Shown here: in pieces, positions 2 to 64,000 of the stretch
Numbering within the stretch: position 1 is the first letter of the stretch
Layout of the letters: every line of letters starts with the position of its first letter
NCBI GenBank assembly: GCA_965112735.1
Contig: OZ218952.1
Coordinates: 5,518,001-5,582,000, forward strand
Direction: 5' to 3'
Source: Phaeosaccion multiseriatum
Lineage: Eukaryota; Protista; Ochrophyta, other classes
DNA: 64,000 nucleotides
Position numbers and translations under genes: made by a program
Notes under the pieces: model-generated
Told to the model about the DNA's origin: nothing
The model's input: only the letters and a program-made list of their open reading frames with translations
Databases searched by the model: none

Positions 2-724
2 GTGTTGACGACTTTGCTCCCCGAAACTTGCGTTCTGATGCGGATTTCCTTTTGTCCCTCTCTTCTATCAAAGGAACGCCTGCAAAAGGCGCGAGATGGG
101 CTTCTCAACGACGGCGTAAGTCTTGTAATGAAGGACGATACGGAGTACCAAGTCTTCCTGAGCCACGCTGGGACGGAGAAGCGGGGCATTGTGTCTCTGC
201 TGCACAGATGTCTGTGGCAGAGAGGAATTCCGACTTTCTTGGATGAGAGAAGCCTGGAGGCAGGAGACCGCGCGGAGGACAAGATGCTCGAGGTAGCCAA
301 GGCCGCCCCGATTGGCGTGGTCGTGCTGAGTCCGTCTTTTGTGTGCCGAGAGTGGCCTCTTCAGGAGATGCAAATCTTCATGGACAGGGCGGAGAAGGGG
401 GAAGCAACGCTGGTGCCGTTATTTTTCGGGCTGACGGTTGAGGAATGCTGGGACACGGGCAAATTAGAAGACGACCATCCCGGCGTGAAGAAGACATGGG
501 GAAAGTGGAGCAAAGGGGAGGAAGGGGGTTGGGGTTGGCTTGAGCAGGGGAAGACAGCAGACGAGCTTGCGAAAGACCTGCTGTGGGGTGTGGGTATGCA
601 CACGGGTCTCCGCGACGACCAGAAAGAAGATCTGTTTGCTCTCGCCAAAAGAGTGGCCAACAAGGTGGAAAGGGCATTGACGACGTTACATTCCAAGTCC
701 AAGAAAAGAAAATTCGAAGGGTAG
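2..724 (+). CDS. TIR domain, 3' terminal part of a gene that starts upstream of the window (possibly another LRR-ROCO-TIR)
   Basis: YQVFLSHAG...PTFLDERSL...IGVVVLSPSFVCREWPLQEM...LVPLFF TIR motifs, with Glu at the catalytic position. Probable acceptor AG at 72-73. Very similar to the TIR at 57394-58044. Confidence 0.85.
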   Translation: MLTTLLPETCVLMRISFCPSLLSKERLQKARDGLLNDGVSLVMKDDTEYQVFLSHAGTEKRGIVSLLHRCLWQRGIPTFLDERSLEAGDRAEDKMLEVAKAAPIGVVVLSPSFVCREWPLQEMQIFMDRAEKGEATLVPLFFGLTVEECWDTGKLEDDHPGVKKTWGKWSKGEEGGWGWLEQGKTADELAKDLLWGVGMHTGLRDDQKEDLFALAKRVANKVERALTTLHSKSKKRKFEG

Positions 725-19000: not shown

Positions 19001-19342
19001 GGGACACCAAGCGTCTCGCTGCGTGCCAACAAGAGCAACAGTGACGAGGACGACGATGGTAATGGAGAGACGCAGGAAGATTGTCGACTCAGAGCGCCTC
19101 AGGACCGTTCCTTTGACGGGAATTTGCTTGAGCGCTACTCGGGGCGGTTACGCTATTTCAGCCCGCTGGAGCTTGCGCGTCTGCACCACTTCCCCCCTGG
19201 GTTTGGTTTCCCGGCCGGCGTGAGCGACAAGAAGAGGTGGGAGCTGTTGGGGAACGGTCTTCACGTGCTCGTGGCGGGGGAGGTGTTAAAGTTTCTCTTG
19301 TCCAGGCAAGAGGAGGAGGAGGAGGAGGAGGAGGAACGATGA
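16078..19342 (+). CDS. DNMT2: SET-domain + DNMT2/TRDMT1-type cytosine-C5 methyltransferase fusion
   Basis: SET: APSTTEGVGCFALQDIPEG, FVNHSPSNAN, TRDVKEGEELFIDY. MTase: VLEFYSGIGG, AFDIN, SPPCQPYTR, ENVVGF, PNDRPRYF, DNMT2-specific CFTKAY..GTGS, LRYFSPLELARL, LLGNGL. There is a frame change (intron or indel) within the GGA repeat at about 17180-17415. Confidence 0.8.
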
Positions 19343-43471: not shown

Positions 43472-46400
43472 ATGTCTAGCGTCCTCGAAGAGCAGCGTAG
43501 AATACTCACAGCCATCTTTTACGCCACGAGCGGACCCGCTTGGTCAAACATTACAGGATGGAACACGGAAGCACCATTGGAGACCTGGTTCGGAGTGAGC
43601 GTAGAGAATGGCTATGTGGTGAAGCTCGACCTGAAAAGCAACGGCCTCAGAGGTGGGAGAGACGTGATTATGGTTGTTGCGCCTTAGGTCCTGAAGTGTA
43701 TTCTAAAGTCCAGAAGGTGTGGCCCAACTTTTCTCGCGTCCGCTTGACTTAGTGTGACCATAGAACTTTCCACCCATCCGCAGGGAGTATTCCAAGGGAG
43801 CTTGGAGTTCTTCAGAACCTTACGGGACTGTACCTCGGCAACAATAACCTCACTGGTGAGTGGTACGCGAACCCGTTCGCGTCCCTTTGACTTGGTATGA
43901 GCATGAACTAATGAACTTTCCTCCCATCCGCAGGGAGCATTCCACCCGAGCTTGGAAGTCTGGAGAAGCTTGAGTATTTGAACCTCTCCGACAATAAGCT
44001 CACTGGTTAGTGGTACGCGAACCCGTCCGCGTCCCTTTGACTATCAGTGTGACCAAAGAACTCTCCTCCCATCCACAGGGAGCATTCCACCCGAGCTTGG
44101 AAGTCTTGAGAAACTGAAGGCGCTCAACCTTTGGATCAATCAGCTCAGCGGTAGGTCGTAGGCGTACCGTTCGCGTCCCTTTCACTTAATATGAGTATAT
44201 CCCAAAAAAAAAAAACAAAAAAAAAAACCCTCCGATACACAGGTCCTATTCCCGCTGCCCTCACCGGGCGATTGGGGGTCAAAATCACGCATTACGCTTT
44301 CCGTGGTAACACCCTCAGTCTCCCAGAAGACATCAACACCCAGACCCATCTGACCAAGCTCGATTTGTCCAATCAGGACCTTGTAGGTAGGTGGTACGCG
44401 TACCCGTTCCCGTCCCTTTGACTTGATATCAGTGTGACAAGAACTCTCCTCCCACCCGCAGGGAGGATTCCACGAGAGCTTGGAGGTCTTCAGAACCTTG
44501 AGAGACTGTTCCTCAACAACAATCAGCTCACTGGTGAGTGGTACGCGAACCCGCTCGCGTCCCTTTCGCTTGAAAGTCATATGACAAAGAACTTCCCTCC
44601 GCTCCGCAGGGAGCATTCCACCCGAGCTTGGAGCTCTGGAGAAGCTTAAGCGTTTGAACCTCTCCCACAATAAGCAGCTCACCGGTAAGTGGTACGCGAA
44701 CCCGTTCGCGTCCCTTTCACTTGATATGAGTGTGATCAAAGAACTCTCCTCCCATCCGCAGGGAGCATTCCACCCGAGCTTGGAGGTCTTCAGAACCTTG
44801 CGAGTCTGCACCTCGAGAACAATAAGCTCACTGGTGAGTGGTACGCGAAACCGTTCGTGGTACGCCCACCCGTTCGCGTCCCTTTCACTTAATTTTAGTA
44901 TGCTCAAATGACTTCCCTCGCATACGCAGGGAGCATTCCACCCGAGCTTGGACGTCTCGTCCAGCTCACCCGTCTGTTCCTCCACGGCAATGAGCTCTCC
45001 GGTGAGTGGTACGCGTACCCGTTCGCGTCCCTTTCGCTTGATAGTCGTGTGACAAAGAACTTCCCTCCGCTCCGCAGGGAGCATGCCAAGGGAGCTTGGA
45101 AGTCTGGAGAAGCTTGAGTATTTGGACCTCTCCTACAACAAGCTCACTGGTAAGTGGCACGCGTACCCGTTCACACCCTTTGACCTGGAGCTCAGCGTGA
45201 CCAAAGAACTTTCTAGCCCCATTTGACTTGAAATACTGACAAGAGCGAAAATCGTCTCCCTTCCTGCTTGGCCGTTTCCAGAGATATCGCTTTACGCAGC
45301 AAGAGGCCTGGAGAAGCTCTCAAAACTGCAAACATTACACCTCCATGGCAATCCTTGGACAGCACCCAGCGTCGATGTGGTGGCTCTCGGCCTTGAGGCA
45401 GTGACGCGGTATTGGATCGACCTGACTCAAGGCAAGGAGCGGTCGTGGAAACTCAAGGTACTGTTGGTGGGGCGGCACAAGGCAGGGAAGACGACCTTGG
45501 CGCTATCGCTAACAGGGGGACAGAGGGATCCTCCTATTGGACAGGATGAGTCGACGGTTGGCATCGAGACGAACTCAGTAACGCTGGGGGAGGACGAGAG
45601 TAAGCAATTGGAATTGGTGATTTGGGACTTTGCGGGGCAGCAGGATTACTACGCCTACCACCAGCTGTTTCTCACCAAGTGGGCGTTGTACATACTCACC
45701 GTCAACCTCTCGGCCTTTAGCGGGGGATCAGAGAGAGTGGAACGCGATTTGGTTGTTGAGTGGCTCGATGCTCTGCAAGCATACGCGCCTGGCAGTGTTG
45801 TGGTTGTTTTGGGATCTCACCGTGATACCGTGGAGCGGGGGGGGGGGGACGTTGACAAGGTAGTGCGTGACGTCAAGAAACTAGTGGACAGAGTTCTGAG
45901 GACACATGCGAGATGCGGTGGAACCATAGAGCCTTTAAAGGTGCAAGAGAAGTACTTGGCTGTGGATCTCACAGCCGACGAAGATGTGCAGAAGGTTCGC
46001 GAGTACATTAAGTCGCTCGCGCTGGACGGCTGCACCGAGGAGACACCCAGCACGCTGTTCCCGGATGTAGGAAAGGTGGTGCCCCGCCCGTGGGTGACGG
46101 TACGCCTCACACTAGAAGAGTACAAGGACGAGCTGTGCATTGGTGATAAGCAGCTGCAGGACAAGTGGAGGGAGTCCGAGGGAGCTCAGGAACTCAACAT
46201 AGACGACCCCGAGAAGACTTTTGAGTTGGCCTTGACATGGCAACAGGCAGTAGGAGCGGTGCTGTGGCTGGAGGGGTATGTGCACGTCAACCCACTTTGG
46301 CTGATGGCATTGGTCAAGCCACTTGCTTCCCACAAACTCACGAAAGACAGGGTAGAAGACGAGGGGTGGCGCAATATGCTTACTGATATGGCGGAGAACA

Positions 46401-47737
46401 ACATTGGGCCCAACAAACGGCTTCCATCGTTCCTTGCTCTTCACGAGGAGGAGAGCAATTTCCTGACCAAAGCAACGACTTCTTCCGAGTACATCTATTG
46501 CCTGTGGCAGCTCTGGGTGTCCGTGGGACACGAAGTCGGTGCTGCGTCCTGCGAAGAAGGTGAGCCAGTGAAGAAGGCGTTTCGGCGGCTCGAAGAGGAC
46601 ACGGAGTTCTTCAAAGGCATGCTTAAGACACTGGCTCAGTACGGTGTGATCCTGCCCGTGACCGGACTCCAAGACGAGGAGGGCCGTAAGGACGTGTACG
46701 TGGCCCCAACGAGGCTCCGATTAGGCGGGGATGGCAATGCTGAGGTGCGGGAGGTCTTAACGGCTTTCCTCAAGGCGGGGGCGGAGGAGTGTACTCGAGG
46801 CCATTTCAAGGCGTGCAATGCTCTTTTTCCGTCTGGGACGCTACCCTTTTTGCTTGCCTGCTTTCTGGGAAAGCGAAACAAGGAGGTGGTCGTCCAGATC
46901 TACGGGTGCGCCAAGTATGCCGCTGCGCTTCGGGTGAACCACGTGGACGTTCTCGTCTACGTAGAAGGGAGCGATCTTCTGCTGTACGTGAAGAGCAATA
47001 CCCAGCGTAGCTGTCGGCACGTTGGGGGGATGGTTCACAATTGGATCGGAGATATGCTGGACGAGAGGTTCAAGGGCTTAGCCTTCATTTCCCCTGAAGC
47101 ACCCATGGAGTCGATTGCAGGCAGACGTCACCCCCTGGCGGGCGAGCTGGGCCTGCTCGACGACGAGTATGCCAAGGACGACGCGGCGCAGTTCGATGTC
47201 TTTTTGAGCCACGCCGGGCCCGACAAGTGGGGGCTTGTCTACAACCTGTGGGTGGCGCTGTGGGACGACGGCATAACGGCCTTTCTGGATAGGGAGGATC
47301 TTCAATTGGGTCGTCAAGCTCCCGGCTACGTCGTCAATGCGGCGAAGAAGGCCAAGATCGGATTGGTGGTGCTCAGCCCAGCGTTCCTCTGCCGCGAGTG
47401 GTGCCTCAAGGAGACAGAGATTTTCATGGAGAGGCTTGAGAAAAGGAGAATGGGCGTCGAGGAGGAGAAGGACTTCCTGGTGGTGCCCCTCTTCCACAAA
47501 CTCACACCGCACGACTGCTACAACGGAACGTATCAGCTGCTCGAGGCTCATCCCGAGATAGCCAAACAGTGGGAGGAGTGGGAACAGAATGATGGACCGG
47601 AGAAATACTGGCCGAAGCTGTGGCAGTCTCTTTTGCTTGTCCTTGCGGGGCAGACCGGCCTGGAGTATCAGGAAGAGCAGTATGAGGCCGATTACGTTGA
47701 GAAAGTAAGGGCGCGCATTAAGACTACACTAAGATGA
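43472..47737 (+). CDS. LRR-ROC-COR-TIR protein A (intact, 11 exons)
   Basis: N-cap exon 43472-43652. LRR exons 43784-43855, 43934-44005, 44079-44150, 44243-44386, 44462-44533, 44610-44684, 44762-44833, 44930-45001, 45078-45149. Terminal exon 45282-47737 with P-loop VGRHKAGKTT, STVGIE, WDFAGQ, GSHRD, COR-like VHVNPLWL and TIR FDVFLSHAG...EWCLKE. All junctions were checked and are in frame. Confidence 0.92.
43784..45180 (+). repeat. LRR exon/intron cassette array A (~150-bp units)
   Basis: Intron consensus GTRAGTGGTACGCGAACCCGTTCGCGTCCCTTT...TGACCAAAGAACTYTCCTCCCATCCGCAG alternates with 72-nt-type exons. Confidence 0.92.
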
Positions 47738-48186
47738 ATAGTGGCAAATTATTTAAAAAAAACTGTGTTCAAAGAGCTGCTCCTCGAGTGCGCACGAGAG
47801 AAGATCTGCCCAACACGGCCCCCGCCACGCTCAACGCCAACTCTACAGCAGCCATACTTCGCCTCGAGATCCTCTGCTTTCTACTTGAAGCCTGATTCTG
47901 TGCTCTCATGGGGGCTTCGAACAACAGAGCATACTTGGTTGACAAGAGCAGCACCAGGACGAGGAGTTAGTATCAGCCCTCCTCCCAAGAAGAGTCAAGC
48001 GCATCCTCCCAGTACCACCCTGCCTCACCCTCACTGCGCCCAGCCCAGCGCTCTCTTTGTGGAGAGGTGTATGGGCATGTGCACTGCCGGCCAAGCTCGG
48101 GATGGATCTCGCTCGTGTACCACCTTGCCCCTTGGCTCGTGTACCACCTTCCCCCTCGGTGCTGCTGGGGCGCGTGGTGTCGGGTA

Positions 48187-50400
48187 GGCACAGCGGGGAG
48201 GTGAGGTCATCAATCCACAAAGACGTCACACTGATTCACGACTAGCGGGTACAGGTAAAGAGCGCACAGACAGGAGGAGTGCGACCCTCTGCGCTCTACA
48301 GTGAGTCCCTCCTGCAAGGAAGCAAACAGGAAGAAGATCTGTTTCCTCTTCCTTCTCTGACTCACTTGCGAGCTGATGGCTGTCCGCGGCCCAGTGAAGA
48401 GCGTCGCCTCGAAGGCTTGTGGCCTCCTGGAAAGAGCTGGGCAGGGAGAGAGAGAGCGCACGTGCACAGGGCGAAAGAGAGAGAGGGAGGAGAGGGAGGA
48501 GAGGGCAGCGAGTAGAGGGGGAAGGGGAGAAGAGGCCAGAGAAAAGTGCCAGCCAAGGGAACGCAACATCAGCAGCAGCAGCAGCAGGAGGAGAGAGAAG
48601 GGGGGGGACAGAGAGAGGGGAACACATGGAGATACAAAAACACAGCCGCGCAGAGAGAGAGAGTGACAAGAGACATAATGATAGAGGGATAGTAGGAAAG
48701 AGATGAAGAGACAGAGAGGCAAAAGAGCAGCCCTCATGCACCGCGGTGACGTGTGTCCACAACAAGTGTAGAGTACGTAGCCCAGCAGCCAGCACAGGGA
48801 AGAGCAGGGGCGTGATGCCGGAGAGCGGAGTTTGTCTGTGAACACCCGAGGAGCCGTATGCAGAGTACGCGTGGATGCCTCCTTTGCGTGTGTCAGCGTT
48901 GGGGCCGGGGCCTTGTACGTGCGTGGCATTTGTGCGTGGCATGAGAGCGTGTGTGCGTGTGCGCGTATATATATTTGTGTGTGTATTCGTGAGTCCCGTG
49001 ACGTTCGTGTTTCAGACTGACCTGGGTGGTCCTCCTCAAAAGTCTCGAAAATATGTCCATTGCCCGACCGTACATGCACACACATACACGACGGCATGCT
49101 GTTGAGCAGGCCCAGAATCACATCACTCGGGTACTGCGGCAAGATGCGGTAGACCAGAAAGAACACGAACTTCTCTCCACCCAAGGAGGCGATGGCAGCA
49201 AACGGCAGCACAAATACGGGCATGCCCGGGCTGTACATGAGGCACAATGAACACCGTGCCGAGCCTGCCAGTGTGATGTCGGGGGAGGTGGCAGTGGCGG
49301 TGGCAGTGAGCGGGGATGAGATACGGAGGCGAGGGGGGGGAGGCGCCAGTCCAGTGCAGGCCAGGTAAGGATCGGGTCAGGTCAGTAGAAAAATGTATGT
49401 GGGGTGCGGGGGAGGTGGAGGGTGGAGAGGGGTGGGGGTGGGGGAAGAGGTGGGTTGACATGCCGTTACGCAGAACGAACCAGTCTCTACGAGACGATCG
49501 ACAAAGTATGCAGTGCACCTCCAAACAAAGGAGGGTAGAGAGAGGCACGTGAGTGTCTACTTTCACGTCGGACAAATGCTATGTCGTCGCCATCCATGAC
49601 TTGATTCGGGTCCGCCCTCTTATCCTTCTGACCGCCGCCCACGGGAAACACAACTCAGGGCCCGACGAGGTGGGAGCCGGGCAGGTGCAGCGGGAGATCG
49701 TCACAGTCTCTCGGTAGGATGGGAGGCCACAGGGCGGAAGGTCTCTTCTCTGCTGTTTGCCAACGAACGACCCCCCCCCCCCTCGCCCTACTGCCGGCCC
49801 CTTCATAGTGAAACCGCAGTGTTTTCTCCCTCAGCCCTCCGGTTTGCGTGGGGCGGGGCACGCACGCACGCACCCACCCGCCCACACCCTCCCTCCCTTC
49901 CTCCTCGACTCACCCCAAGTCTGAGTAGCGGCAAAGGTGACGGCGGCGTGAGGGATACAGGTGCTCATTGCCATAGTCAGCATGAGAGCCGCCCCCGAGT
50001 CGCGGCACCGCTTACGCTGAGCGGATTCGAAGTGGAGCAAGTTGGAGGCGCAAGGGGAGGGAGGAAGGGAGTCAAGACATGAGATCGGGTGTGCGACAGT
50101 CTAGAAGAGCGCTCGGAGGATCGGAGTGAATGAATAAATGGCATGGACAAGAGGTACGGGTTTTGGTCTCTGTTGATGCCCCTTCAGTGTTGTGTGACTG
50201 TTTCGCCTACTCTTCAGTTTGAAGTGCTCACTCACTCACGGACGCGCTCTCTCCCTCCCTCCCTCCCTCCCTCCCTCCCGCCCTCCATCGCTCCCTCCCC
50301 CACTCACCACGCCGTCGTAGGTGAGGTTGACTCCGAAGATGGCTGCGATTAAGGCTGCTCACGGCCGTGTTGATAAGCTTCGTACCAGAGAGCGTGTGTT
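48187..50400 (-). pseudogene. TMC/OSCA(TMEM63)-like membrane channel gene remnant, copy 1
   Basis: VCLMYSPGMPVFVLPFAAIA...KFVFFLVYRILPQY and KLINTAV pieces resemble the C-terminal TM region of TMC/CSC1-like proteins; small indels relative to copy 2. Confidence 0.5.
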
Positions 50401-51372
50401 TCTCTAGAATGGGGGGGAAGGGAAGGGAGGGAGGGAGGGAGGGAGGGAGGGAGGGCATCAGACAAAGAGGCAGCCCTACGGAGGAGAGTCTCAGAGTCGC
50501 TGACTCGTTCACAGAAGTTGGTGGAGGGTAGGTAGGGGGAATGGAGCTGGGACAGAGGAGAGGAGAGAAGGCGCCGACAAATGCAAGTCTACCCCTCCGT
50601 TCAACGCAGCGCAAGGGCGATGACGCGCAGCAGCTTGGAGAAGCACACATTGACACACACCACTGTCGTAGAGCTGCCTCTCTCTACCTTGGAGCCCAAG
50701 ATAGAACGAAAAAAAAAATGCATCCAACCTGAAAAACACAACAAAGGAAAGTACAGCCCTACCCCCAAGGTGAGGCCTCCCCAGTCACAGGAACTACACC
50801 CACAGGCCCCCTTACTACTCAGCCTCACCCATCACTACCGACTACCCTATAGCATGGCGCTTGTAGCTACGTATCACAGAGACCAACCCACCAGAACGTC
50901 TCTACTAATCACCAACACCCACCAGATGCACGTCGCCACACCAACCCTCGTAGCACCAATGTCGCACGCGGGCCCAACTCCAGCTCCGTCCTTGGACCAT
51001 TGTCGGAGCGCTTGCATCCCAGTCGCTCCCCACATCGAGCCGCCATCCGCCAGCCTCCCGCTGATAGTTGCAACCATCCCAAGCGTCCCCTCATACCCAG
51101 TCAGCAGATGTCCATCTCGCTGCTAAAGTCCCTCACCAGATCAGAGAGAGAAAGAGAGAAATTCATATAGATATGCCAGTCTCTCCTCCGGCCCAGCCTC
51201 GCCCCCAATTTCCACAGATCCCCAGCCCGACGCACTCCAACTCTCTCAGCCCCAGGTACACTCACACCGGTCCTCAAGCCCCCAGGGCCTCTCCATTTGT
51301 GAATTTGATGGATGCAAAGCTCGTTCACGTGTGCGTGTGTCTTAAGTAAAATAAACAAATTCAAAAGGGAGG

Positions 51373-54300
51373 ATGTCTAGTGTTGAGGAGGAGCGTAGAA
51401 TACTCACAGCCATCTTTCACGCCACGAGCGGATCCGGTTGGGCTAACACTACAGGAGTGACGGTAGAGAATGGCTATTTGGTGACGCTCGACCTGAAATA
51501 CAACGGCCTCAGAGGTGAGAGAGGTGTGATTATGGTTGTTGTGCCTTACGTCCTGAAGAGCATTCTTAAAGTCTGTTCAGAATGTTCGAATAGTTCTCTC
51601 TCTGTTCATGCAACAGTACATGTGATAGGGGGGGGGGATTATTAGCCCCCCTTGTCACAATTATTAGCCCTCCTTGCATGTGATGGGTCTAGAATATTCG
51701 GGAAGAAGGACGAAGCAAAGCGGGGCAAGAGAAGGCGGGAGGCAGCGGCATGACGTGGTAGTCCAGCGAACCCTTGGCGTCCCTTTCACTTGATATGAGT
51801 ATGACCAAAGAACTCTCCTCCCATCCGCAGGGAGCATTGAGCTCACCGGTGAGTGGTACGCGCACCCGTTCGCGTCCCTTTCACTTGATATGAGTATGAC
51901 CAAGGAACTTTCCTTCATACTCAGGGCTCATTCCACCCGAGCTTGGAAGTCTGGAGAAGCTCAAGCGTTTGAGCCTCTCCCACAACAGGCTCACTGGTAA
52001 GTGGTACACACACCCGTTCGTGTCCCTTTCACGTGTTATGAGTATGACCAAAGAACTTTCCTCCCATCCGAAGGGAGCATTCCAACGGACCTTGGAAGTC
52101 TGGAGAAGCTTGATCATTTGGACCTCTCCTTCAACGAGCTCACTGGTAAGTGGTACGCGTACCCGTTCGCGTCCTTTGACTTGATCTTGGTCTGACCAAA
52201 GAACTTCCCTCCGCTCCGCAGGGAGCATTCCGGAGGGGCTTACAAGTCTGGAGAAGCTTGAGCACTTGGGCCTCTCCGACAACAAGCTCACTGGTAAGTG
52301 GGACGCACAGCCGTTCGCGTCCCTTTCACTTGATATGGGTGTGACTCAAGAACTTTCCTCCATCTATAACCCAACAATATTCCCTCCGATACACAGGCCC
52401 TATTCCCGCTGCCCTCATCGGGCGATTGGGGATCAAAATTACGCATTACGCCTTCCGTGGTAACAATCTCAGTCTCCCAAAAGACGTCAACACCCAGACC
52501 CATCTGACCAAGCTCGATTTGTCCCATCAGGACCTTGTAGGTAGGTGGTACGCGAACCCGTTCGCGTCCCTTTCGGTTGATAGTCGTGTGACCAAAGAAC
52601 TTCCTCCCGTCCGCAGGGAGAATTCCACAGGAGCTTAGAAGTTTGGAGAATCTTGAGGTTTTGAGCCTCTCCTACAACCGGCTCACGGGTAAGTGGAACG
52701 CACACCCTTGCGCATCCCCTTGGACTTGATATTGGTCGAGCTGAAGAACTTCCCCCCCATCTCAGAGAGTATTCCATCGGAACTTGGAAATCTTTCAAAC
52801 CTTCGAGAACTGGGCCTCAACTTTAACAATCTAAAAGGTAGGTGGTAGTGAACGCTTTTGCGCCCCTTTGATTTGATATCAGTGTGACCAAAGAACTCTC
52901 CTCCCATCCGCAGGTCACATTCCAAAAGAGCTTGGAAGTCTTAAGAACCTGACGGTGCTCAACCTGTGGGAAAACCAGCTCAGCGGTAAGTGGTCGCATA
53001 CACGTTCACGCCCCTTTGACTTGATATAAGTGTGACCAACGAACTTTCCATCCACCCGCAGGGAGCATTCCAAAGGAGCTTGGAGACTTGAAGAAGCTTG
53101 AGCGTTTACTTCTCAGCCGCAACAAGCTCACCGGTGAGTGGTACGCACACTCCGTTCGCCTCCCTTTGATGTGGTATTCGTCTAACCAGAGAACATCCCT
53201 TCGCTCCGCAGGGAAGATCCCATCCGAGCTCGGCAGTCTCCACCAGCTGACGCGGCTTGATCTCGCCAGCAACGATTTCTCCGGTGAGTTATACGGGCGC
53301 CCATTCGCGCCCCGTTGACACGTTTGCGTATAACCCAACATGTTCCCTCCGATACACAGGTCCTATTCCCCCTGCCCTCATCAGGCGATTGGGGATCAAC
53401 ATCCCGGATTACTCTTTCAGTGGTAACAACCTCAGTCTCCCAGGAGACATCGACACCCAGACCCATCTGACCAAGCTCGATTTGTCCAATCAGGGCCTTG
53501 TGGGTAGGTTGTACACACACCCGTTCGCGTCCCCGTGACTTGACGTAGGTATGACCAAAGAGCTTTCCTTCCATCCGCAGGAAGCATTCCGGTGAAGCTT
53601 GGACAGCTTTCAAACCTTCGAGAACTTCGGCTCAACGGGAACAATCTAGAAGGTTGGTGCGCGAACCCGTTCGCGTCCCTTTCACTTGATTTTTGTATGA
53701 TCAAAGAGTTTTCCTCCATCCCCAGAGAGCATTCCACCCGAGCTTGGAGGTCTTCAGAACCTTGAGATACTGCTCCTAAACAACAATAAGCTCACTGGTA
53801 GGTGGTACGCGTACCCGTTCGTGTCCTTTTGGACTTGATATTGGTCGAGCTGAAGAACTTCCCTCCCCTGCGCAGGGAGCATTCCAAGGGAGCTTGGAGA
53901 CTTGAAGAAGCTGGAGCGTTTACTTCTCCGCAGCAACAAGCTCACCGGTGAGTGGTACGCACACCCCGTTCGCGTCCCTTTGATGTGGTATTCGTCTAAC
54001 CAGAGAACATCCCTCCGCTCCGCAGGGAAGATCCCATCCGAGCTCGGCGATCTCCACCAGCTGACGCGGCTTGATCTCGCCAGCAACGATTTCTGCGGTG
54101 AGTTATACGGGCACCCATTCGCGCCCCGTTGACACGTTTGCGTATAACCCAACATATTCCCTCCGATACACAGGTCCTATTCCCCCTGCCCTCATGATGC
54201 GATTGGGGATCAACATCACGAATTACTCTTTCAGTGGTAACACCCTCAGTCTCCCAGAAGACATCGACACCCAGACCCATCTGCCCAAGCTCGATTTGTC

Positions 54301-57300
54301 CAATCAGGGCCTTGAAGGTAGGTGGTACGCGTACCCGTTCGCGCCCCCTTGACACGTTTGTTTATAACCTACTTCTAACATCTTCCCTCTGATACATAGG
54401 TCGTATCCCCCCCCCCCTCATCGGGCGATTGGGAATCCACATCAAAATATTCGCATTCGGTGGCAACTCTCTCAGACTCCCCAAGGACATTCACAACCAG
54501 TCACACCTGACTAAGCTCGAATTGGCCGATCAAGGCCTTGAGGGTGAGTGGTACACGCACCCCAGTTCGCGTCCACTTGATATTCGAGCCGATGTAACTC
54601 TCCTCTGCTCGGCAGGCAAGATTCCAAAGGAGCTGGGCGAACTTAGGAGCTTGACCGTCCTGGACCTCTCCGACAACAAGCTCAGAGGTAAGCCTACTCG
54701 TTATCTCCAACCGCCCGTGCCGCTACCGTAGTGTTTGACGTAAGACGTCCCTTCCCCTCCACAGGCGCTATTCCAGCGGCCCTCATCGGGCGATTGGGAG
54801 TCCAGATCACAAGCTACAAATTCAAGGGCAAGAACAACTCTCTCCGTCTCCCCAAGGGCATTGGCACCCAGTCACACCTCACTGAGCTCGACATGTCCGA
54901 CCAGGGCCTTGAAGGTGAGTGGCCTCCGTTGTCAAATTCACTTGGTACTTGAATTGATTGACAAACTCCTCCACGCCACAGGGAGCATACCATCGGGTCT
55001 TAAAGACCTACAGAACCTGAAGATACTCAATCTCAACATGAACAGGCTCAAAGGTATGTGGTACGCGAACCCGTTGTCCACCTCACTTGATCTTTCTATG
55101 ACCAAACAATGCTCCTCCCGTCTGCAGGCGAGATTCCGAAGCTGGACGGTCTGACGAACCTGACCACCCTTCACCTCGCAGCGAACAACCTCAGCGGTAA
55201 GTGCTACGCGAACGCTTGTCCACTTCACTTGATACTAGTGTGACCAAAGACTTTTGTTCCACTCCACAGGGAGCATTCCAGCCTGGAATTTCGGGCCTGG
55301 AGGTCTCCACGGGCTGACCACGCTGTCACTCTCTAGTAACGAGCTCACCGGTAAGTGGTACACTCGTACCTTCTGACGCCCCCTCATATTGGTAGGATTT
55401 GGTTCCTTTAGTGCAGGTCTTACTTCCCTCGTTATTTATGTTCCTGGTGGCCTTTCCTGTTGGCCTTTGCTTCCCCCCCCCCGCTTGCCTCGTTGCCCAG
55501 AGCTCGATCTTGAGACCGCTCAGAGCTTACTCGAGCATACCCCCGCTGCACTCATATCTGGGAATGCGTTTGCCAACATTCCTAACGGCGTCTGCCGAAA
55601 TGGGCTGGCATCTGTCGTTCGATTTCTGGAAGATTTGGCACAGAGAGCCGTGGCTTGCTGGGATCTGAAGGTCGTATTGCTAGGGTCAGAGGGTGCTGGA
55701 AAAACGAGTCTTGTTCGCTCCATCGTGGAGCGTGGTGCTGCCCAGACGGAGGGCGCATCGCCATCCACCGTGCTGGTGGATACTCACGTTTGGCAACCAA
55801 GATGGGATGACAAGACCCTGAATGTGCACTTCTGGGACATCGGCGGTCAGCACTGCTCCTCGGCGATTCTCCCGCTTTTTCTGACCGAAGGGGCGCTGTA
55901 TGTTTTGGCGGTTGATCTCCACCGCTACGCTACCACTCCGTCTTCAGCGAGGTGTGATGTGACGCACTGGCTTGAGGTGGTTCAGGAACACTGCCCAGGG
56001 AGTGTGTTGGTTGTGGTGGGCACCCACACCGATGAGTTTCGAACACGTCAAGGGATTGATGAAGCTCTAGCACGTCTGAATCGTGAGGTGCTGGACCACA
56101 GAGAGAGTATGAGTATCGGGGCACAATCATCTTCAAAGATTGAGGTGAAAGAGGTCTTTGCTCTCGGGGTCGACTCACCTAAAAGTGTGCAGGCTGTGAT
56201 GGATCACATTCAAAGCCTTGCGCTGGGTCAGGGTCAGGGTCAGGATCAGGGGCAAGGTCAGGGTGACGCGCAGCAGGCGCAGCAGGGGCAGCAGGGGCAG
56301 CAGGGGCAAGGTCTTGGCGTATCGCCAGCGTGTAAGCCCTTCCCGGACATAGGTAAGCAAATCCCAAAATCGTGGAGGGATGTGTACAATGCGCTCGATA
56401 ACCTGAGGAAGAAGGGGCGCGTATTTGCTTCGTTTTCTGATGTGGTGGAGGAAGTAGGGAGGGGTGGAGAGAGCACCACACGTGAGGCCTTGCGCCTTCA
56501 CCAGAATGCAGGCTTTGTGCTTTGGGGAGGCCATGCTGACGATGTGATTTATCTTGATCCGGCGTGGTTGATGGCGTTGCTAAGGCCGTTGGCTGACCAC
56601 AAGCTGAGCGAGCGTCGAGAGAACAGCACCTGGGAAAAGGGTGAAGATCAACTCTTTGCGCAGGGGGAGAGTCATGCACATCTCGTGGGAGGGCAAGTCG
56701 TGTACCGTGATCTGCGTGTGGAGGGGGACACCTTTTGCCACACCGGTCATCTAAATCGCGCCTACCTAAGCCTTCTGTGGAAGCTTTGGCACCAGTGCCC
56801 GCTGGAAGGTGAAGTGATTCAAGGATGCAGTGATGCGAGGCGACTCGCTCCGTCCAGAGTCCTGGAAGACGCACCATTGTTCAAGACCACGCTGAACACT
56901 TTGGTGCGGAAGGGTATTCTCATTCCTGTGAAAGAGGGTGCGGAGACTAGTAAATACGTCGTTCCTGCACGCCTGGCGAGTATGAGTGAGCGGGGTCCTC
57001 TGCGTGCATTCAGACGATGGGGCACAGGGGGCAGGGTGTGGGAAAAGAGAGTCACGGCCGCACGCGGAATGCCCTTTCCAATGAGCACCCTGGCGCTCTT
57101 TCTGGCTTCGGTCGGCAGTGCTCGTCAAGTGGATATAAAGGCATGTTCGAGCAGGAGCGCGTGTATTTTGATCAAGGGTGTTGCCACTTTCGTAGCGGTC
57201 AGAGACTTTGATTGTTCCGTGTACGTTTGTGGCGATGGCGTCTCTGCACAAGCAGCTCTGAACACGTGCCACAGCTGGCTCTGGTCGACGTTAGACAACG

Positions 57301-58044
57301 AAAACAACAAGTTGTCGGGGCTGGGGTGTAGGAACGTCACGGACCCCCCCCCCAACTCATACCGTTTTTTCAAGCCTCAAGTGGAAAGGGGCGGTGCCTG
57401 ATGCTGGCAAGTACGACGTGTTTCTGAGCCACTCTGGGGAGGAGAAGCGGGGCATTGGACTTACGCTGCACACGATCTTGGAGCTGAGAGGAATTCCGAC
57501 TTTCTTGGACGAGCCAAGCTTGCACGGAGGCGATCGCGCGGAGGACAAGATGCTCAAGGTGGCCCGCACCGCCCCGATTGGCGTGATCGTGCTGAGTCCG
57601 TCTTTTGTGTGCCGAGAGTGGCCTCTTCAGGAGATGCAAATCTTCATGGAGAGGGCGGAGAAGGCGAAGAGGGGTGAAGAAAAGTTCAAGTTGGTACCGC
57701 TATTCTTCGGGCTGACGGCTGAAGAATGCGGTGAAATGGAGCTACTACAAGGAAACCATCCTAGCGTGAAGGATACGTGGGACGAATGGAAAGGATTGAA
57801 ATGGGGTTGGCAGAAGGAGACGGAGAATAGAGCGAGTGACCTTGCTAAAAGGCTGCTGACGAGTGTGGGTGCACACACGGGTGTCCGCAATGACCAGCGA
57901 GAAGGTCTACTTGCTTTGGCCGAGCGAGTGGCCAACGTGGTGGAGAAGAACGTGACGGAGTTCGAGCATGAGAAGAGAGCTGCACCTAACACGAGCGGAA
58001 GGGATAAGGAGGTTGTTGAACCTACGTCAAGCAGTGCGAATTGA
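51373..58044 (+). CDS. LRR-ROC-COR-TIR protein B (24 exons); the TIR is out of frame, best explained by a C10 run at 57344-57353
   Basis: N-cap exon 51373-51514, 22 LRR cassette exons between 51831 and 55350, terminal exon from 55501 with LGSEGAGKTS, WDIGGQ, GTHTD and IYLDPAWL. TIR YDVFLSHSG...EWPLQEM lies in the +1 frame; removing one C fuses them. Confidence 0.85.
51755..55370 (+). repeat. LRR exon/intron cassette array B (22 cassettes)
   Basis: Same intron consensus as array A; exon sizes 18, 69, 72, 81, 144 and 150 nt; all introns phase 1. Confidence 0.92.
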
Positions 58045-58527
58045 AGGCCGCCAGCATATGACGGATAATACAAAGAGTGAAGAGAGAGGCAACCACACAC
58101 GTCTCTCAATTACTTTTGCTTATTTGCTCGCCTCCTGATAAGTGTGGCTGGGCGACGTCGAGGTTGCTTCTAGTATTCCTTCCTGGATCGCTCGCTCCCA
58201 GTGTCGATATCGCTGCTGCTGTCTCCTTTCCTCCTTTCCTGTGAGTACGATCACTGCCGACTCGCCCTCTTCGACGGACACGTTCAAGCACTGCGAGGAG
58301 GGATGAGGACAAGGACGGACAGACGGAGCGGACATGAAGTAGACACGAGCAGGGCCAACGCGACGAGTTAGTTTGTATTCGTAGCTCAGTCCTCCTCCAA
58401 AAGAAGGCAAAGCGCTCACCCTGACTACGCCCATCTCGTCGCTCTCGGTGGATGAGCAGCTGCGCTGCCGGCCAAGCTCAGAGGCTCACCCCGCTGGTAT
58501 ACCGTCCATATCCCCCTTCGGTGCTGC

Positions 58528-60385
58528 TGGCACAGCGGGGGAGGTGAGGCCATCGATCCACAAAGAGGTTGAGTCACGATTAGCGTGTGCATACGGAAGA
58601 GCGCGCACAGTCAGGAGGAGAGCGAGCCCTTGCTCTCCACAGTCAGTAGCTCCTGCAACAAAAGAAGCTGTAAGGTCTCTGTGATACTACTCGTACTTCA
58701 CTCTGTTCTACTGCGAAGTATCTACTTGCGAGCTGACCTTGTCGTGTGTCCGCGGCCCAGTGAAGAGCGCCGCCTCGAGCCTCGAAGGCATGAGGCCTTG
58801 CTGAGGCCTTGCTTCTGGACGAAGCTGGGCAGACAGAGAGAGCGCGCGCCAACACACACACAGAGAGAGAGAGAAAAGAGGGCAGAGAAGTGCCAAGGGA
58901 AAGCATCAGAAGGGGGGGGAGGGAGACTTGAGAAGGACATTTTTCGATAGAGGGAGAGAGACACACAGATTAGAGAGGTAGAGTAGGGCAGAGTGCAGAG
59001 AGGGAGGGACAAGAGGCACACGCGGGCACAGGAGAGGAGTTGATCGGAAGAGGGCGGGGGTAACAAGACGCAGGACGAGGGGGGAGGCGGAGAGGGAGAG
59101 GGAAAGAGTGAGACAGAGTCAGAGAGAGGGGAAGAAAGAGAGATTGGAGAGAGATAAATACAAACACACGCAGAGAGAGATTCCAGAGAGATTGATGGAG
59201 ACACCAGAGCAGGAATGATACATGGAGAGAAGAGACACAGAGAGAGAGCAGCCCTCACTCACCGCGGTGACGTGTCTCCAGAACCACGACTAGAGCATGT
59301 AGCCCAGAACCACGACTAGAGCATGTAGCCCAGAAGCAACAGTAGTAGCAGCAGCGGCAGCAGTAGCAGCAGCAGCAGCAGCAGCAGCAGCAGGGCCCCG
59401 AGCCTGGGGAGCAGAACTTGTCTGTGGACAGAGGGGCCGTACGCAAAGTACATGTGGATTCCTCATGTGCGTCAGCGTTTGGGCCAGGAAAGGAGTGTGA
59501 GTGCGTGCGTGTGCGTGCGTGCGTGCCGTGTGTGCCGTGACGTTGCGTTTGTGACTGACCTGGGTAGTCCTCCTCAGAAGTCTTCGATATCTGTTTGTTG
59601 CACAACACCAACACACACGCACCTCTCTGCAGCAGCAAGTAGGGTATGAGACATAGCAGCCCCAATACAACGACAGCACGTTTGGCACGTGTGACGGAAC
59701 ATGGACGTCTCCACCCAAGGAGAAGATGGTGAAGAAGGCGATGGCAGCAAATGGCAGGAGCACGGGGATGCCCGGGCTGTACATGAGGCACACCGTGACG
59801 ACCATGCCGATGTGGGTGCAGCGAGCCTGCCAGTGGGTTGGTGGGGGTGGGTCGTGTCAGGACGGGGAGGTGGCAGTGGTGGTGGGTGGTGTCAGTTACA
59901 GTGGGGTAGTTAGTACGGTAGGGTTTTCGGCATTCATGACCTTAATCAGACCCCCTCGTACCCTTCTGCCCGCCACCGATGTTGGACACAACACAAGGTC
60001 CGACAGGGGGGGGGGGCGAGGCAGGTACAAATGGAGAGCATATCGTCGCATTGTCTCGGGGTCAAGAGGTTGGGACTGAATGGCACGGACAAGAGGGAAG
60101 GGTTCTGGCCTCTGTTGATTGGCCCTTCGGTGTTGTATGAATGCTTCGCCTGCCTTGCAGTTTGGCTTCCTCACTCATTCACTCCCTCTTTCATTCGCTC
60201 CCACCTACTCACTCACTCACTCACTCACACACTCACTTAAGTGCTCTCTCACCCCCTCCCTCCCCTGCTTACCACGCCGTCTTTGGCGAGGTTGACTCCG
60301 AAGATGGCGAAAATGATGGTGCTGTAGGCGATGGTGCTCACGGCTATGTTGATAAGCTTCAGCACCAAAGAGCGCTTGCTTTTCT
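58528..60385 (-). pseudogene. TMC/OSCA-like membrane channel gene remnant, copy 2
   Basis: SLVLKLINIAVSTIAYSTIIFAIFGVNL and VVTVCLMYSPGIPVLLPFAAIAFFTIF; collinear nucleotide similarity with 48187-50400. Confidence 0.5.
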
Positions 60386-61557
60386 GGGGGTGGGGGGTTA
60401 GGGGAGGAAGGGAGGGAGGGAGGGAGGCAAGGATTGAGTGATTGAGTGAGTGAGGGAGGGCATCAGACAAAGAGACCGCTCCTTGAAGTCACGAACAGGT
60501 TGCTACATGGAGCCAAAAAGGGAACAGCGAGAGGAAAGGAGGAAGGAAGGACGAAGCAAGGGAATGCACATGAAGGAGTGAGAGGGAGTATGCTGCTCAC
60601 AGACAGGGGAGTGCGCTTCTGATTGATGGAAGAGTGGAGGGCGAGCTGCTGACAAAGGGGGGGTCTCGTGTGCGGAAGATACGACGGGGGGGGGGGGGGG
60701 AGGAAGCGTTGCGAGGCGTGAGGGTCGGAGGAGAACAAGGCTCAAGGATTCTGTACTGTACGAGAGAGAGCGAGAGGGAGAGGAGTTAAATGCCTACCTG
60801 CACCAAGCTCGATCACAAGAGTGTGGTGTTGTGGAAGATAAGCCGCAACCGCGAACAAGTCGCTCGTGTCCTGGAGAGAGGGAGGGTAGGGTGACAACAG
60901 GGTAGAAGAGGGTAGGGAAAACATCAGCTCCAAGGGGTTTTGGGCTTTGGCGTGCTCTTCTCACACAAAAGCCTGCACACCCAAAAAGTGACCTACGATC
61001 AGGTAGACCGACACCCCTCTCTCTCTCTACCTCCTTCGCTTTCTCCCTGATGTTTCCAAGCATCAGGACCATCCATGCCCACACACCTGTCGCTGGCTGT
61101 GCCCCCCCCCTCTCCGTCTCCATCAATAACTTAGTGCTACTCCACTGCCACACCGCCCCTCACTGGACTGGGAAGAGCAGACACGAATACATCTCCCTGG
61201 GCCAGACGTCTGCGAAGCTGCACACGTTCTCGTCGTTTGGGTCCTCGAACAGGATCCAGCTCTCTCGCGGGAAAAAACACGCCATTGTCCCAGCCAAATG
61301 ATGATGACTGACATCCCAGTGGCATCACGTGTTGGTGATCCAAATCTTCACAGGAAGGCGACCTATTATCCACATAGCTGGGGCCCTGCTGCTGAAGAGG
61401 GAGGTACAGTGTGGTACAGTCCACCCTGTGAGAAGACTTGTCACGCCTTTGGAAGTAGTGGCGGCTAGGGGACTTCCTCTGAATGGAGGCAGCACAGGCG
61501 GGACGGGAGAAAACCTAAACTCCTTTAAAGTGCAGTGTTTCGCATAATGGAGCGGCA

Positions 61558-62045
61558 CTTGGGGCCTTCTTCTTGGCCACAACCGGAGCGAGATGGAGGG
61601 AAATGGATGGAGCAACGACAAAAAACCCCTTTGAAGAATTTGCGTGGAGGGAGACGAGGATGGATACGTGGTGGGTTTTGAGCTGCCCCACAATGGGACC
61701 CAAGGTAAGAAGGTCGTGGAGGTTGTGGGGCTGGGGTCAGGGTTGGTATCCCCCTTGCGCGTGTTCATCTCTACATGCGGCTGGGGAAGATAGCGCTCTT
61801 GCTGAAGAAAGGAATGTCTTCGGGGTGGTTGCCAGTGACTGCCTACAACTCCCCCTTAAAAGGTTTGGGACTCAGCTTTGAGTGTAGGTGGGAAAAGGGA
61901 CTTGGCGTTTATAATGAGCAAGAGCATTCCCCATCTCGCATTTCACTAACGGAGCATTCCGTCGGAGCTATGTTAGATAGACCAGCTCTCCGATTTCCTG
62001 GGGCTGCGAGCCTGTCCGACAAGTACCTCACAGGTAAGTGGTACG
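61558..62045 (+). pseudogene. Decayed third LRR(-ROCO) locus: frameshifted N-cap exon plus one degenerate LRR exon
   Basis: LGAFFLATTGARW / GWSND / GYVVGFELPHNGTQG|GTAAG parallels AIFYATSGPAW..GWNTE..GYVVKLDLKSNGLRG. 61951-62033 reads SIPSEL...SLSDKYLT and is followed by GTAAGTGGTACG. Confidence 0.7.
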
Positions 62046-63349
62046 ATAGCAGTGGTTTGCGCCGAAGCTAGACAAGGACGGGCTCAAGCTGGACGCAGAC
62101 AAGCTTCGCACTGACAAAGTCCTCACTGAGGTCTTTGCCAGGGCTGTTTAGAATGCTGTCCTGGACAAGAACAGGGAGAGTGAGCAGGAGGAGAGCGGGC
62201 GGTCTTTCAACAAGGACCTGGGGTGTAGCTCTGCTGGAAAAGCTCGTGGACTTGGGTGTCGTCTTCGAGAAGGCGGATCCTGGTGATGACGCCATTCGTG
62301 CCGAAGTCTCCCCGCGCATGCCAGATCCGATGGTTGACAAGCAGGGGCAGAAACTATGAGATGCGGCACAGTCGGTCAGCGATTCTTTGAACGACAAGGA
62401 GGTTAATTTTAAAGCAGCTGTGCCTCACGCTGGAGCGCCCCCCTTCGCTAGGCACGATTGCGAAACTGGCGGCGACTCTCTGTGGTGGTGGGCTGGAGGC
62501 AAGGGGCGTGGTTTGCTGCTACCGAGGAGGCTACATGGCCTGTCGCAGCTGCGTGACCAGCGAGAAGATGTGTTTGCTTTTGCCATAAGAGTGGCCGGCA
62601 CAGTGAAAGATACGTTGATTTGTCACCATCCCGATACATGCAGATACGCAAGCATTCAAGTAAAGTTCAATCGTCACCCCAAGTTGGCGTACAGAAAAAG
62701 TCGATTGTCGTATCCATTACTCAACCTTTAGGAGGGAAGAGATTCGTGTGGAACTCCCCCCCTTCCCCCTTGTTGATGTGTCAATCATCGACACGGGATG
62801 GATCTAGATACAGATAGAAGGGTGTCGCAGAACCCACAGTCCAGCCTACGACGACAATTGTCAATTAGACTACTACTAGACAAGTGGAGCGACTGGTACG
62901 TGTATTAATACAGCTTAACCCGAGAGCAAGCCTGCTGGCTGCCCTGTCCTTACACAACCAGGCTCTGAGAGAGGAACCCAGGCTCCTGAGCGACGTGCGT
63001 CAGTACTTCGCATATCACAAATGGCATCGACCTACAAACATCCCCAATGCCTAACCCCAGCTTCTTGCTCCCCCCTCATTAGCACTATATACTACTGTAA
63101 CCCCCATACTGCCACACTAACTAACACTACTGCAACTGCATACTACCCCGCTAACTAATACTTAAACTACAAGGCCTAGAAGCCAAAATGCGAGGGATAA
63201 TACTGCAGCTCCAGGAAAGAGGGCAGCCCAGCACCACTCCCAATCGGCCTCCTCCTCTTTCTCCTTCTTATCTTATCACACATTTCAAGCACACCCTTTC
63301 ACTTCCCCCCCCCACCCTCCTGTTTGCTTTCCCTCTGTCTCTTGCTTTT

Positions 63350-64000
63350 CTACATATCCGCCAATCGCCGCTGGGCTTCCAAGCAAACTTGTTCGACCTC
63401 ACGCAGTTGTGTTTTCAGCATTCCCTCGTCTTCTGGGTGGATCTGTATCCATCGGCGCTCAAAGTCCGCGTATCGAAAAGGTCGATTGTCGTTCTCAACG
63501 TACGCGGTTCCATTCTCCATAAAGCTGTAGCGCTTCTTGTCTGGAAACCCCCCATCATCTCCCTTGTTGTAGTTGAGTCGATGATAGTTGGCGCAATCCA
63601 AGGGCTCAACAAGAGTGCGGTAGTTGTTGGCCCTAGTCAACCATGTGATGTGAGGTGCGTCTGTCCAGGGAAATCGAATGCTTGCATTCCACCACCTCTC
63701 TTCGTCCAAAGGCGGGTTTCCCTTGAGAGCCCCGTCCCAAAATGCAGCCAATTCTCGGCGTGCCTCCTCAGCCTCGGTCTTCCTCTGGTCATTTTCCCCG
63801 AGGCGATACACATGAACGTGCCACGGCACCTCCGAGCCCTCTTCTGTCAAGGCGGACGCCTCCAAGGACTCCTTAATGGACCCTAGTCTGGCCAAATTTC
63901 TTGTCATCCTTTCCTCCTCCTTATTGCGCTTGTTCTTGTCGATGGTGCCCATGATGTACTCCAAGGTAAAAAAAGCAACCAACCATCTCCCACCTCCTCT
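63350..64000 (-). CDS. EDS1/PAD4/SAG101-like EP-domain protein (3' part; frame open at the window edge)
   Basis: Three ordered motifs RRELAAFWDGAL, WLTRANNYRTLVEPLDCANYHRL and YVENDNRPFRY match recalled EP-domain motifs (R.ELA.FWD; W....YRRLVEPLDIANYHR; Y....RP.RY). Confidence 0.8.
   Translation of the reverse strand, partial: RGGGRWLVAFFTLEYIMGTIDKNKRNKEEERMTRNLARLGSIKESLEASALTEEGSEVPWHVHVYRLGENDQRKTEAEEARRELAAFWDGALKGNPPLDEERWWNASIRFPWTDAPHITWLTRANNYRTLVEPLDCANYHRLNYNKGDDGGFPDKKRYSFMENGTAYVENDNRPFRYADFERRWIQIHPEDEGMLKTQLREVEQVCLEAQRRLADM

Follow-up and report, generated by a model that had tools for sequence, protein, structure and literature searches.

How signaling from TIR receptors proceeds without EDS1 in algae and non-seed plants is a question already posed in the literature (10.64898/2026.05.20.726525), and a stretch of DNA from the alga Phaeosaccion multiseriatum raises it in a concrete form. 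The stretch, referred to here as the window, comprises 64,000 nucleotides (nt) of contig OZ218952.1 (assembly GCA_965112735.1; positions 5,518,001 to 5,582,000 of the forward strand), has a G+C content of about 57%, contains many short introns, and is eukaryotic. In part of it, two candidate immune receptor genes stand in tandem; they belong to the brown-alga-type leucine-rich repeat (LRR)-ROCO family, and each is extended by a C-terminal TIR domain. Nearby lies a small gene whose product matches the EP domain. Published papers treat the EP domain as the unique hallmark of the EDS1 family, and EP proteins are described as occurring only in seed plants (PMC9806590; PMC10834447; 10.1101/572826); short EP-like sequences of green algae are mentioned in one further source (10.64898/2026.05.20.726525). 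No EP-type gene outside green plants, and no association between EP-like and TIR sequences outside seed plants, was found in the searchable literature. It must therefore be asked whether this small EP protein, hereafter called a mini-EP, has anything to do with the TIR proteins encoded near it. The best single reading, which is given somewhat better than an even chance, is that TIRs of the window type and the mini-EP are functionally tied, because a fusion gene and a head-to-head gene pair that unite the two were found in other lineages.

The mini-EP gene is located at one end of the window (all window coordinates are counted from its first nucleotide).

63350-64000, minus strand: mini-EP gene; open reading frame (ORF) open to the window edge, stop codon 63352-63350, probable start ATG 63951-63949, giving 199 amino acids

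The ORF (63353-64000, minus strand) matches the Pfam profile EDS1_EP (PF18117) with an E value of 2.6e-8 and 34.2 bits, above the cut-off of 23.1, which upholds the view in an earlier note on this DNA that an EP-domain gene is present. The match covers only profile positions 25-91 of 211. The EP core spans approximately residues 70-190 of the 216-residue reading, which is intact down to its stop codon. Around the ATG at 63951, position -3 is A and position +4 is G, and the sole splice acceptor candidate upstream of it is a poor GAG. The best guess is that the window EP is a stand-alone protein of 199 amino acids, with an ORF that is open to the window edge. It ends about 35 residues past an ERRW motif (AtEDS1 approximately 505-540), and the same early end after the ERxW motif is found in all mini-EPs.

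Several comparisons place this protein with the EDS1 family. When the EP sequence was compared with those of solved structures using phmmer, only EDS1, PAD4, and SAG101 were matched, with YRTLVEPLDCANYHR aligned to AtEDS1 YRRLVEPLDIANYHR. With a profile of five non-plant relatives, about 100 residues (AtEDS1 414-503) were matched, at 4e-14 for PAD4 and 2.5e-13 for EDS1. Similarly, a hidden Markov model built without plant rows matches plant EDS1-family loci at 1e-16 to 1e-23. An AlphaFold (AF2) model of the window EP is all helical (pLDDT 71), and its structure matches are EDS1 (Z 8.7, 129 residues, rmsd 4.0 Å), SAG101 (7.2), and PAD4 (6.9), with the best unrelated chain at 4.1; the alignment given to AF2 included plant rows, and the fold match is thus supporting evidence that is not fully independent. 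EDS1, SAG101, and PAD4 are also the top rows in Foldseek, but with E values of only about 0.1. Judged from these matches, the counterpart of the mini-EP in EDS1/PAD4 is, by homology, the part that lines the ligand cavity. In AtEDS1, residues K440/441, K478, and R493 have been shown to matter (PMC6377607), as have H476 and R493 (10.1101/2022.05.02.490369). The arginine equivalent to R493 is kept in the window EP (RPFRY vs RPTRY) and also in the lineage that carries the fusion gene, and it is the only one among the mapped EDS1 cavity residues whose equivalent is clearly kept.

Relatives of the mini-EP are few. An exhaustive single-sequence search with the EP fragment, in protein libraries that included no protein from the window's own genome, returned three relatives at E<=1e-3, one of them annotated in the green alga Elliptochloris bilobata (KAK9833455.1), and a profile search added a few further mini-EPs. 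The core common to all of them is FW..-..LP..F-TWL...YR..VEP.DIANYYR-HY.E..NRP..Y...E..W..H, and the sequences end soon after it. A tree unites the 15 seed-plant rows in a single clade with strong support (99/98). None of the nine mini-EPs belongs to it, and one of them, the window EP, sits on a long branch. Because the mini-EPs lie outside the seed-plant clade, the window EP does not derive from plant contamination or from a recent transfer, an origin that is ruled out by the tree, the GC content, and the intron style. A scan of metagenomes with the EP pattern yielded 48 loci, nearly all of them low-GC seed-plant EDS1/PAD4 genes (one being Arabidopsis EDS1) that say little about algae, and none has a TIR nearby. 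Also, a paper on a Sargassum genome lists 13-19 'EDS1' genes in brown algae, naming neither an EP nor a lipase domain (PMC12089773). No brown-algal protein was matched in the exhaustive search with the window EP. Given this result and the domains left unnamed in that paper, the Sargassum 'EDS1' genes are probably not EP proteins.

Four other loci bear on a tie between the mini-EP and TIR domains; they carry contig labels here.

L052:1145-2966 (orthologue L003:809-2592), plus strand: TIR-mini-EP fusion gene of an alga, 57% GC, five-exon model
L055:2-3513, divergent genes 745 nt apart: TIR-NB-ARC-LRR gene head-to-head with a mini-EP gene (Logan assembly, SRR15524250; contig seen in nine samples)
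L056:1-1494: TIR and mini-EP pair arranged as in L055
L027:5835-9647, plus strand (JAABUK010012312.1): Lipase_3 exons upstream of a mini-EP, same strand

The fusion gene is present on two contigs, L003 from a JGI metagenome and L052 from the Logan assembly of ERR10900178, which are 85% identical and in which conserved and diverged blocks alternate. When four GT..AG introns are spliced from L052 exactly at the boundaries of conservation between the two contigs, an uninterrupted ORF of 394 amino acids results. Its product has an N-terminal TIR (YDVFLSHSG ... VVVLSADFVRGNWCMWEL) and a C-terminal mini-EP. The TIR matches the three TIRs of the window at 2e-10 to 2e-11 and a TIR of the stramenopile alga Chrysoparadoxa australica at 3e-12, and the C-terminal half of the protein matches the window EP at 1e-14. 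When the L052 TIR ORF was used as a query, it retrieved nothing but itself. In the second lineage, one strand of L055 encodes TIR (1.6e-11), NB-ARC (3.3e-13), and LRR domains by Pfam, and the divergent gene encodes a mini-EP (4.9e-18). The pair on L056 shares 74% DNA identity with it, and GC is 42-44%. This arrangement is relevant also in that non-seed plants are said in published papers to have TIR-NLRs without EDS1.

Taken together, TIR linkage is seen in three of the five mini-EP lineages with a readable context, a small sample, and in one of these it takes the form of a gene fusion. The earlier note had suggested that the TIR proteins and the EP protein may belong together. This is favored by the fusion gene and by the head-to-head pair, and is not borne out by the Chrysoparadoxa and Elliptochloris loci, where no linkage exists. 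Likewise, the recurrence of linkage that was proposed there as a check is found for L052/L003 and L055/L056, and is absent from the contexts of Elliptochloris, L027, and Chrysoparadoxa. No TIR is located near the plant EDS1-family loci that were fetched. On L027, the Lipase_3 exons (GHSLGG, 3.4e-12) and the mini-EP (1.3e-12) form an EDS1-like lipase-plus-EP layout, but with a short EP of the algal type; no TIR is present on the 10.9 kb of this contig.

The receptor side of the putative partnership is made up of two genes and the end of a third.

43472-47737, plus strand: gene A, LRR-Roc-COR-TIR; ATG 43472, stop 47735-47737
Between 43784 and 45149, plus strand: gene A LRR exons (72 nt, one LRR each)
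45455-45826 (approximate), plus strand: Roc, in the last exon of gene A
45827-47170, plus strand: COR-like region, same exon
47192-47726, plus strand: TIR, same exon
51373-58044, plus strand: gene B, LRR-Roc-COR-TIR; ATG 51373; about 16 LRR exons between 51925 and 55350
55668-56033 (approximate), plus strand: Roc of gene B
56037-57317, plus strand: COR-like region of gene B
57409-57867, plus strand: TIR of gene B
57326-57374, plus strand: GT..AG pair of 49 nt at the frame-change site of gene B, with a run of eleven C (C11) at 57344-57354 as the other candidate
2-724, plus strand: third TIR, last exon (TIR and C-terminal tail) of a gene whose start lies ahead of the window; Pfam TIR 4.8e-16

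A single ORF of 786 amino acids in gene A carries Roc (9.2e-18) and TIR (2.4e-11) by Pfam, and gene B carries Roc (4.3e-17) with TIR (3.5e-12) in the next frame. The Roc motifs are the P-loop GRHKAGKT and switch II DFAGQ in gene A, and the P-loop GSEGAGKT, DIGGQ, and THTD in gene B. Pfam finds COR-A at only 0.074 in gene B and has no match for it in gene A. About 480 residues that follow Roc nevertheless have counterparts in Ectocarpus LRR-ROCO proteins (alignments at 4e-27 and 1e-35), with the former value obtained for gene A (residues 34-633, Roc included). Roc-COR is accepted by homology because this alignment runs through Roc plus these approximately 480 residues. Ahead of its Roc-TIR ORF, gene A has an N-terminal cap exon and at least seven stop-free 72-nt exons, bordered by AG/GT, that encode the motif LxxLxLxxNxL with a period of about 149 nt and introns of about 77 nt, and the LRR exons of both genes are phase-1. 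Two LRR-ROC-COR-TIR genes, as the earlier note proposed, are present, with Roc and TIR assigned by Pfam, the LRRs by their exon arrays, and COR, more tentatively, by Ectocarpus homology rather than by Pfam. In database searches, the receptor genes come closest to a Roc-TIR protein of Chrysoparadoxa australica (36% identity), and next to brown-algal LRR-ROCO proteins. Genes A and B are 28% identical in Roc-COR and 45% identical in TIR, and on this comparison they are old duplicates.

All three window TIRs score above the cut-offs for Pfam TIR and TIR_2 and share a motif of the FDVFLSHAG type. The TIR at 2-724, which the same note had picked out, is 43% identical to that of gene A. Its statement that the glutamate of the WxLxE helix is retained throughout is also correct: this catalytic-type residue is present in three of three window TIRs (WCLKE/WPLQE, the latter in the TIR at 2-724), as read from the codons at 47411-47413, 57631-57633, and 365-367, and it is conserved in seven of seven aligned TIRs. 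The nearest solved relatives by sequence are NADase TIRs, namely AbTIR-like bacterial proteins, Roq1, and L6. Cleavage of NAD+ by the window TIRs is predicted from the WxLxE glutamate and from these solved relatives. In the TIRs associated with mini-EPs (window, L001, L052, L055, L056), the first strand reads (F/Y)(D/Q)VF(L/I)(S/N)H(A/S)G, like that of the bacterial AbTIR type; the usual plant motif is FLSFRG.

These components suggest how such a system might operate. The variable LRR array would sense a ligand, and the Roc-COR GTPase would replace NB-ARC as switch and dimeriser. TIR domains brought together by Roc-COR would then cleave NAD+, and the mini-EP would act as the functional partner of the window TIRs, most likely by binding a nucleotide product made by them. 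As a whole, this explanation of LRR-ROCO-TIR receptors with a mini-EP partner is the best available and stands at about an even chance. Its last step is more doubtful: that the EP core binds a nucleotide produced by the TIRs is a tentative proposal, drawn from analogy with plants and from one conserved arginine. Nothing in the analysis supports heterodimers or helper Ca2+ channels. No match to NB-ARC or RPW8 came from a scan of the larger window ORFs; this search of the window was not exhaustive, and it did not extend to the genome.

A number of observations weigh against a working partnership of this kind. No lipase domain is seen in the window EP, whose gene reaches the window edge, and the protein probably lacks this domain, which drives heterodimers in plants. 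It stops about 35 residues after ERRW, so that the C-terminal half of the EP domain known from plants is missing. In these respects the protein does not look EDS1-like in architecture. AtEDS1 F419 is aligned to a threonine in the window EP, H476, K478, and K440/441 are either not conserved or lie in insertions, and the fold match shares its input with plant sequences, as noted above. The reading frame of gene B shifts between 57318 and 57391, in passing from COR to TIR. Removing the 49-nt GT..AG stretch (57326-57374) restores the frame exactly, and the change may reflect a 49-nt intron or else a 1-nt indel, slippage, or assembly error in the C11 run. L003 has a frameshifting deletion of 46 nt in the first TIR exon, and both supporting lineages come from metagenome/SRA assemblies. 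The mini-EP of Elliptochloris has no TIR within 10 kb, and the Roc-TIR locus of Chrysoparadoxa (13.6 kb) contains no EP. Linkage in the window alone is weak evidence, given that a neighbor at a distance of 5-15 kb is only mildly unlikely by chance. Furthermore, the whole case rests on sequence and predicted structure.

Three other explanations compete with a functional tie, and they draw on partly the same facts. The mini-EP might simply be a chance neighbor, unrelated in function to ROCO-TIR genes that are members of a large, dispersed receptor family. It lies 5.3 kb downstream of gene B and 15.6 kb from gene A on the opposite strand, so that the genes are convergent, with decayed DNA between them, and this spacing is what accident could produce, as are the unlinked Chrysoparadoxa and Elliptochloris contexts. 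However, accident would not readily yield both a TIR-mini-EP fusion and a conserved head-to-head pair of TIR-NB-ARC-LRR and mini-EP genes in other lineages, particularly when both halves of the fusion are homologues of the window's own TIR and EP, and chance proximity is accordingly considered unlikely. Alternatively, the locus could be a graveyard of duplicated receptor genes whose module no longer functions, as might be supposed from a truncated third receptor copy, the frame change of gene B at the C11 run, and non-coding homologous blocks after genes A and B that carry a dead channel fragment. Such decay is improbable, the least credited of the three, in view of the one intact ORF of gene A with its intact motifs, the stop-free LRR exons of both genes with their GT..AG borders, the possibility that a 49-nt GT..AG intron removes the break in gene B, and an EP ORF that is intact to its stop codon.

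The remaining alternative accepts the tie and questions its nature. The TIR and the mini-EP might be partners by direct protein contact, with the mini-EP acting as an adaptor, scaffold, or brake for TIRs, which it would bind or oligomerise, and not as a small-molecule receptor. The presence of both domains in one chain of the fusion gene suits regulation in cis, the majority of the cavity residues mapped in plants are not retained, and half of the plant domain is missing from the mini-EP, probably together with the lipase domain that helps to build the two-protein cavity. Against this, conservation in the mini-EP is highest in the stretch that in plants lines the ligand cavity, both the window and the fusion lineage retain the R493 equivalent, and contact between TIR and EP is itself hypothetical. 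A direct protein-protein role is a fair rival to ligand binding, and a little less probable than chance proximity. The preferred reading thus continues to be a functional tie between the TIRs and the mini-EP.

If the TIRs and the mini-EP are functional partners, the comparison with seed plants is the most instructive. In the pathway leading from TIR-NLRs through EDS1-PAD4/SAG101 to ADR1/NRG1, as in the window, an LRR sensor is combined with a nucleotide-switch domain and a TIR bearing the catalytic glutamate, and a separate protein carries the EP core, including the arginine equivalent to R493. The differences are considerable. The switch encoded in the window is a Roc-COR GTPase rather than NB-ARC, and its TIR is C-terminal rather than N-terminal. 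The window EP has about 200 amino acids, representing approximately half of an EP domain with no visible lipase-like domain, whereas the full plant EP domain alone has about 240. Also, the TIR and EP genes of the window show physical linkage, an arrangement that is not usual in plants, and no helper NLR was found among the window ORFs that were scanned.

The receptors themselves have close precedents among algae. Like brown-algal LRR-ROCO genes (Zambounis et al. 2012, PMC3341825; PMC11378527), the window genes encode one LRR per 72-nt exon, show local tandem duplication, and share Roc-COR homology over about 600 residues. The brown-algal members have been published as plain LRR-ROCO proteins without TIR (PMC3341825; PMC11378527), whereas the window genes end in a TIR, have introns of only about 77 nt, and belong to an organism that is not a brown alga. 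A ROCO GTPase followed by a TIR is likewise found in the TPR-ROCO-TIR protein of the red alga Chondrus crispus and in the Roc-TIR protein of Chrysoparadoxa australica. The sensor repeats of the Chondrus protein are TPR and those of the window genes LRR, and no EP partner has been reported or seen for either species. Exon-cassette LRR-ROCO receptors of brown algae are thus already known, as is ROCO-TIR in a red alga, and it is visible in Chrysoparadoxa. What the window adds on this side is a receptor design in which a ROCO GTPase stands in place of the NB-ARC switch ahead of a TIR.

Pairs of TIR enzymes and sensors are a familiar feature of bacterial defense. Thoeris systems and TIR-sensor fusions (TIR-SAVED, for example) couple a TIR enzyme, through a neighboring gene or within the same chain, to a sensor of a nucleotide-derived signal. 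The logic is shared with the window by analogy only, since EP is unrelated in sequence to SLOG or SAVED and the setting of the window is eukaryotic and intron-rich. The green-algal short EP of Elliptochloris (KAK9833455.1) is a closer parallel, with the same mini-EP core and a protein that ends soon after ERxW. It differs in that its gene has no TIR neighbor, whereas the window EP is encoded in a stramenopile-type alga and adjoins TIR genes.

A mini-EP that recurs beside or fused to a TIR in algae is a concrete candidate for TIR signaling that operates without EDS1. The recurring pairing also suggests an origin for EDS1 itself, and the plant link between TIR and EDS1 may be much older than thought. 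One might even imagine that the partnership of TIR and EP-type proteins is an old eukaryotic module, with the mini-EP as the ancestral receiver of TIR output, with ROCO, NB-ARC-LRR, or TIR in cis as sensors, and with seed-plant EDS1 as a later, lipase-fused and enlarged version; this broader history is speculative and is judged doubtful.

Between and beyond the receptor genes, the window also holds the remains of duplicated DNA.

61519-62596, plus strand: truncated third receptor copy; N-cap-like exon and one LRR exon at 61519-62068, C-terminal-tail piece of 42 nt at 62555-62596
59728-59847, minus strand: OSCA/TMEM63-like 7TM fragment of 40 residues; Pfam RSN1_7TM E 0.0016, 18.3 bits vs a cut-off of 28.7
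49068-49250, minus strand: decayed copy of the 59.7-kb channel fragment, found as a tblastn match (CLMYSPGMPVFVLPFAAIA); no Pfam hit of its own

A third, decayed LRR locus had been noticed previously, and it is recognizable at 61.5-62.6 kb from its N-cap, its single LRR exon, and its tail piece. By blastn, this 42-nt piece is 86% identical to 617-658 and 79% identical to 57891-57933, which are the tails of TIR genes. Pfam found no match to a Roc, COR, or TIR core in this copy. The stretches that lie 3' of gene A (47900-50450) and gene B (58400-60450) are homologous, with 67-86% identity in patches, indicating a tandem duplication unit of about 10 kb. Both blocks are non-coding, because all frames are equally conserved. 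Channel-like remnants were also part of the earlier claims; a sub-threshold OSCA-type fragment and its decayed copy are indeed present, and they are non-coding and have no evident role. The fragment at 59728-59847 has no sequence match in PDB. The idea of a signaling channel was rejected on account of this lack of a PDB match and the non-coding nature of the surrounding duplicated blocks, and there is no reason to tie the OSCA-type fragments to signaling.

Elsewhere in the window, Pfam identifies ordinary genes that encode an RBR-type E3 ligase, a transglutaminase-like protein, SET, C5 DNA-methylase, Utp12, and JmjC/cupin domains. At 16395-19339 on the plus strand, a C5 cytosine DNA-methylase ORF comes immediately after a SET-domain ORF, and the two might belong to one gene.

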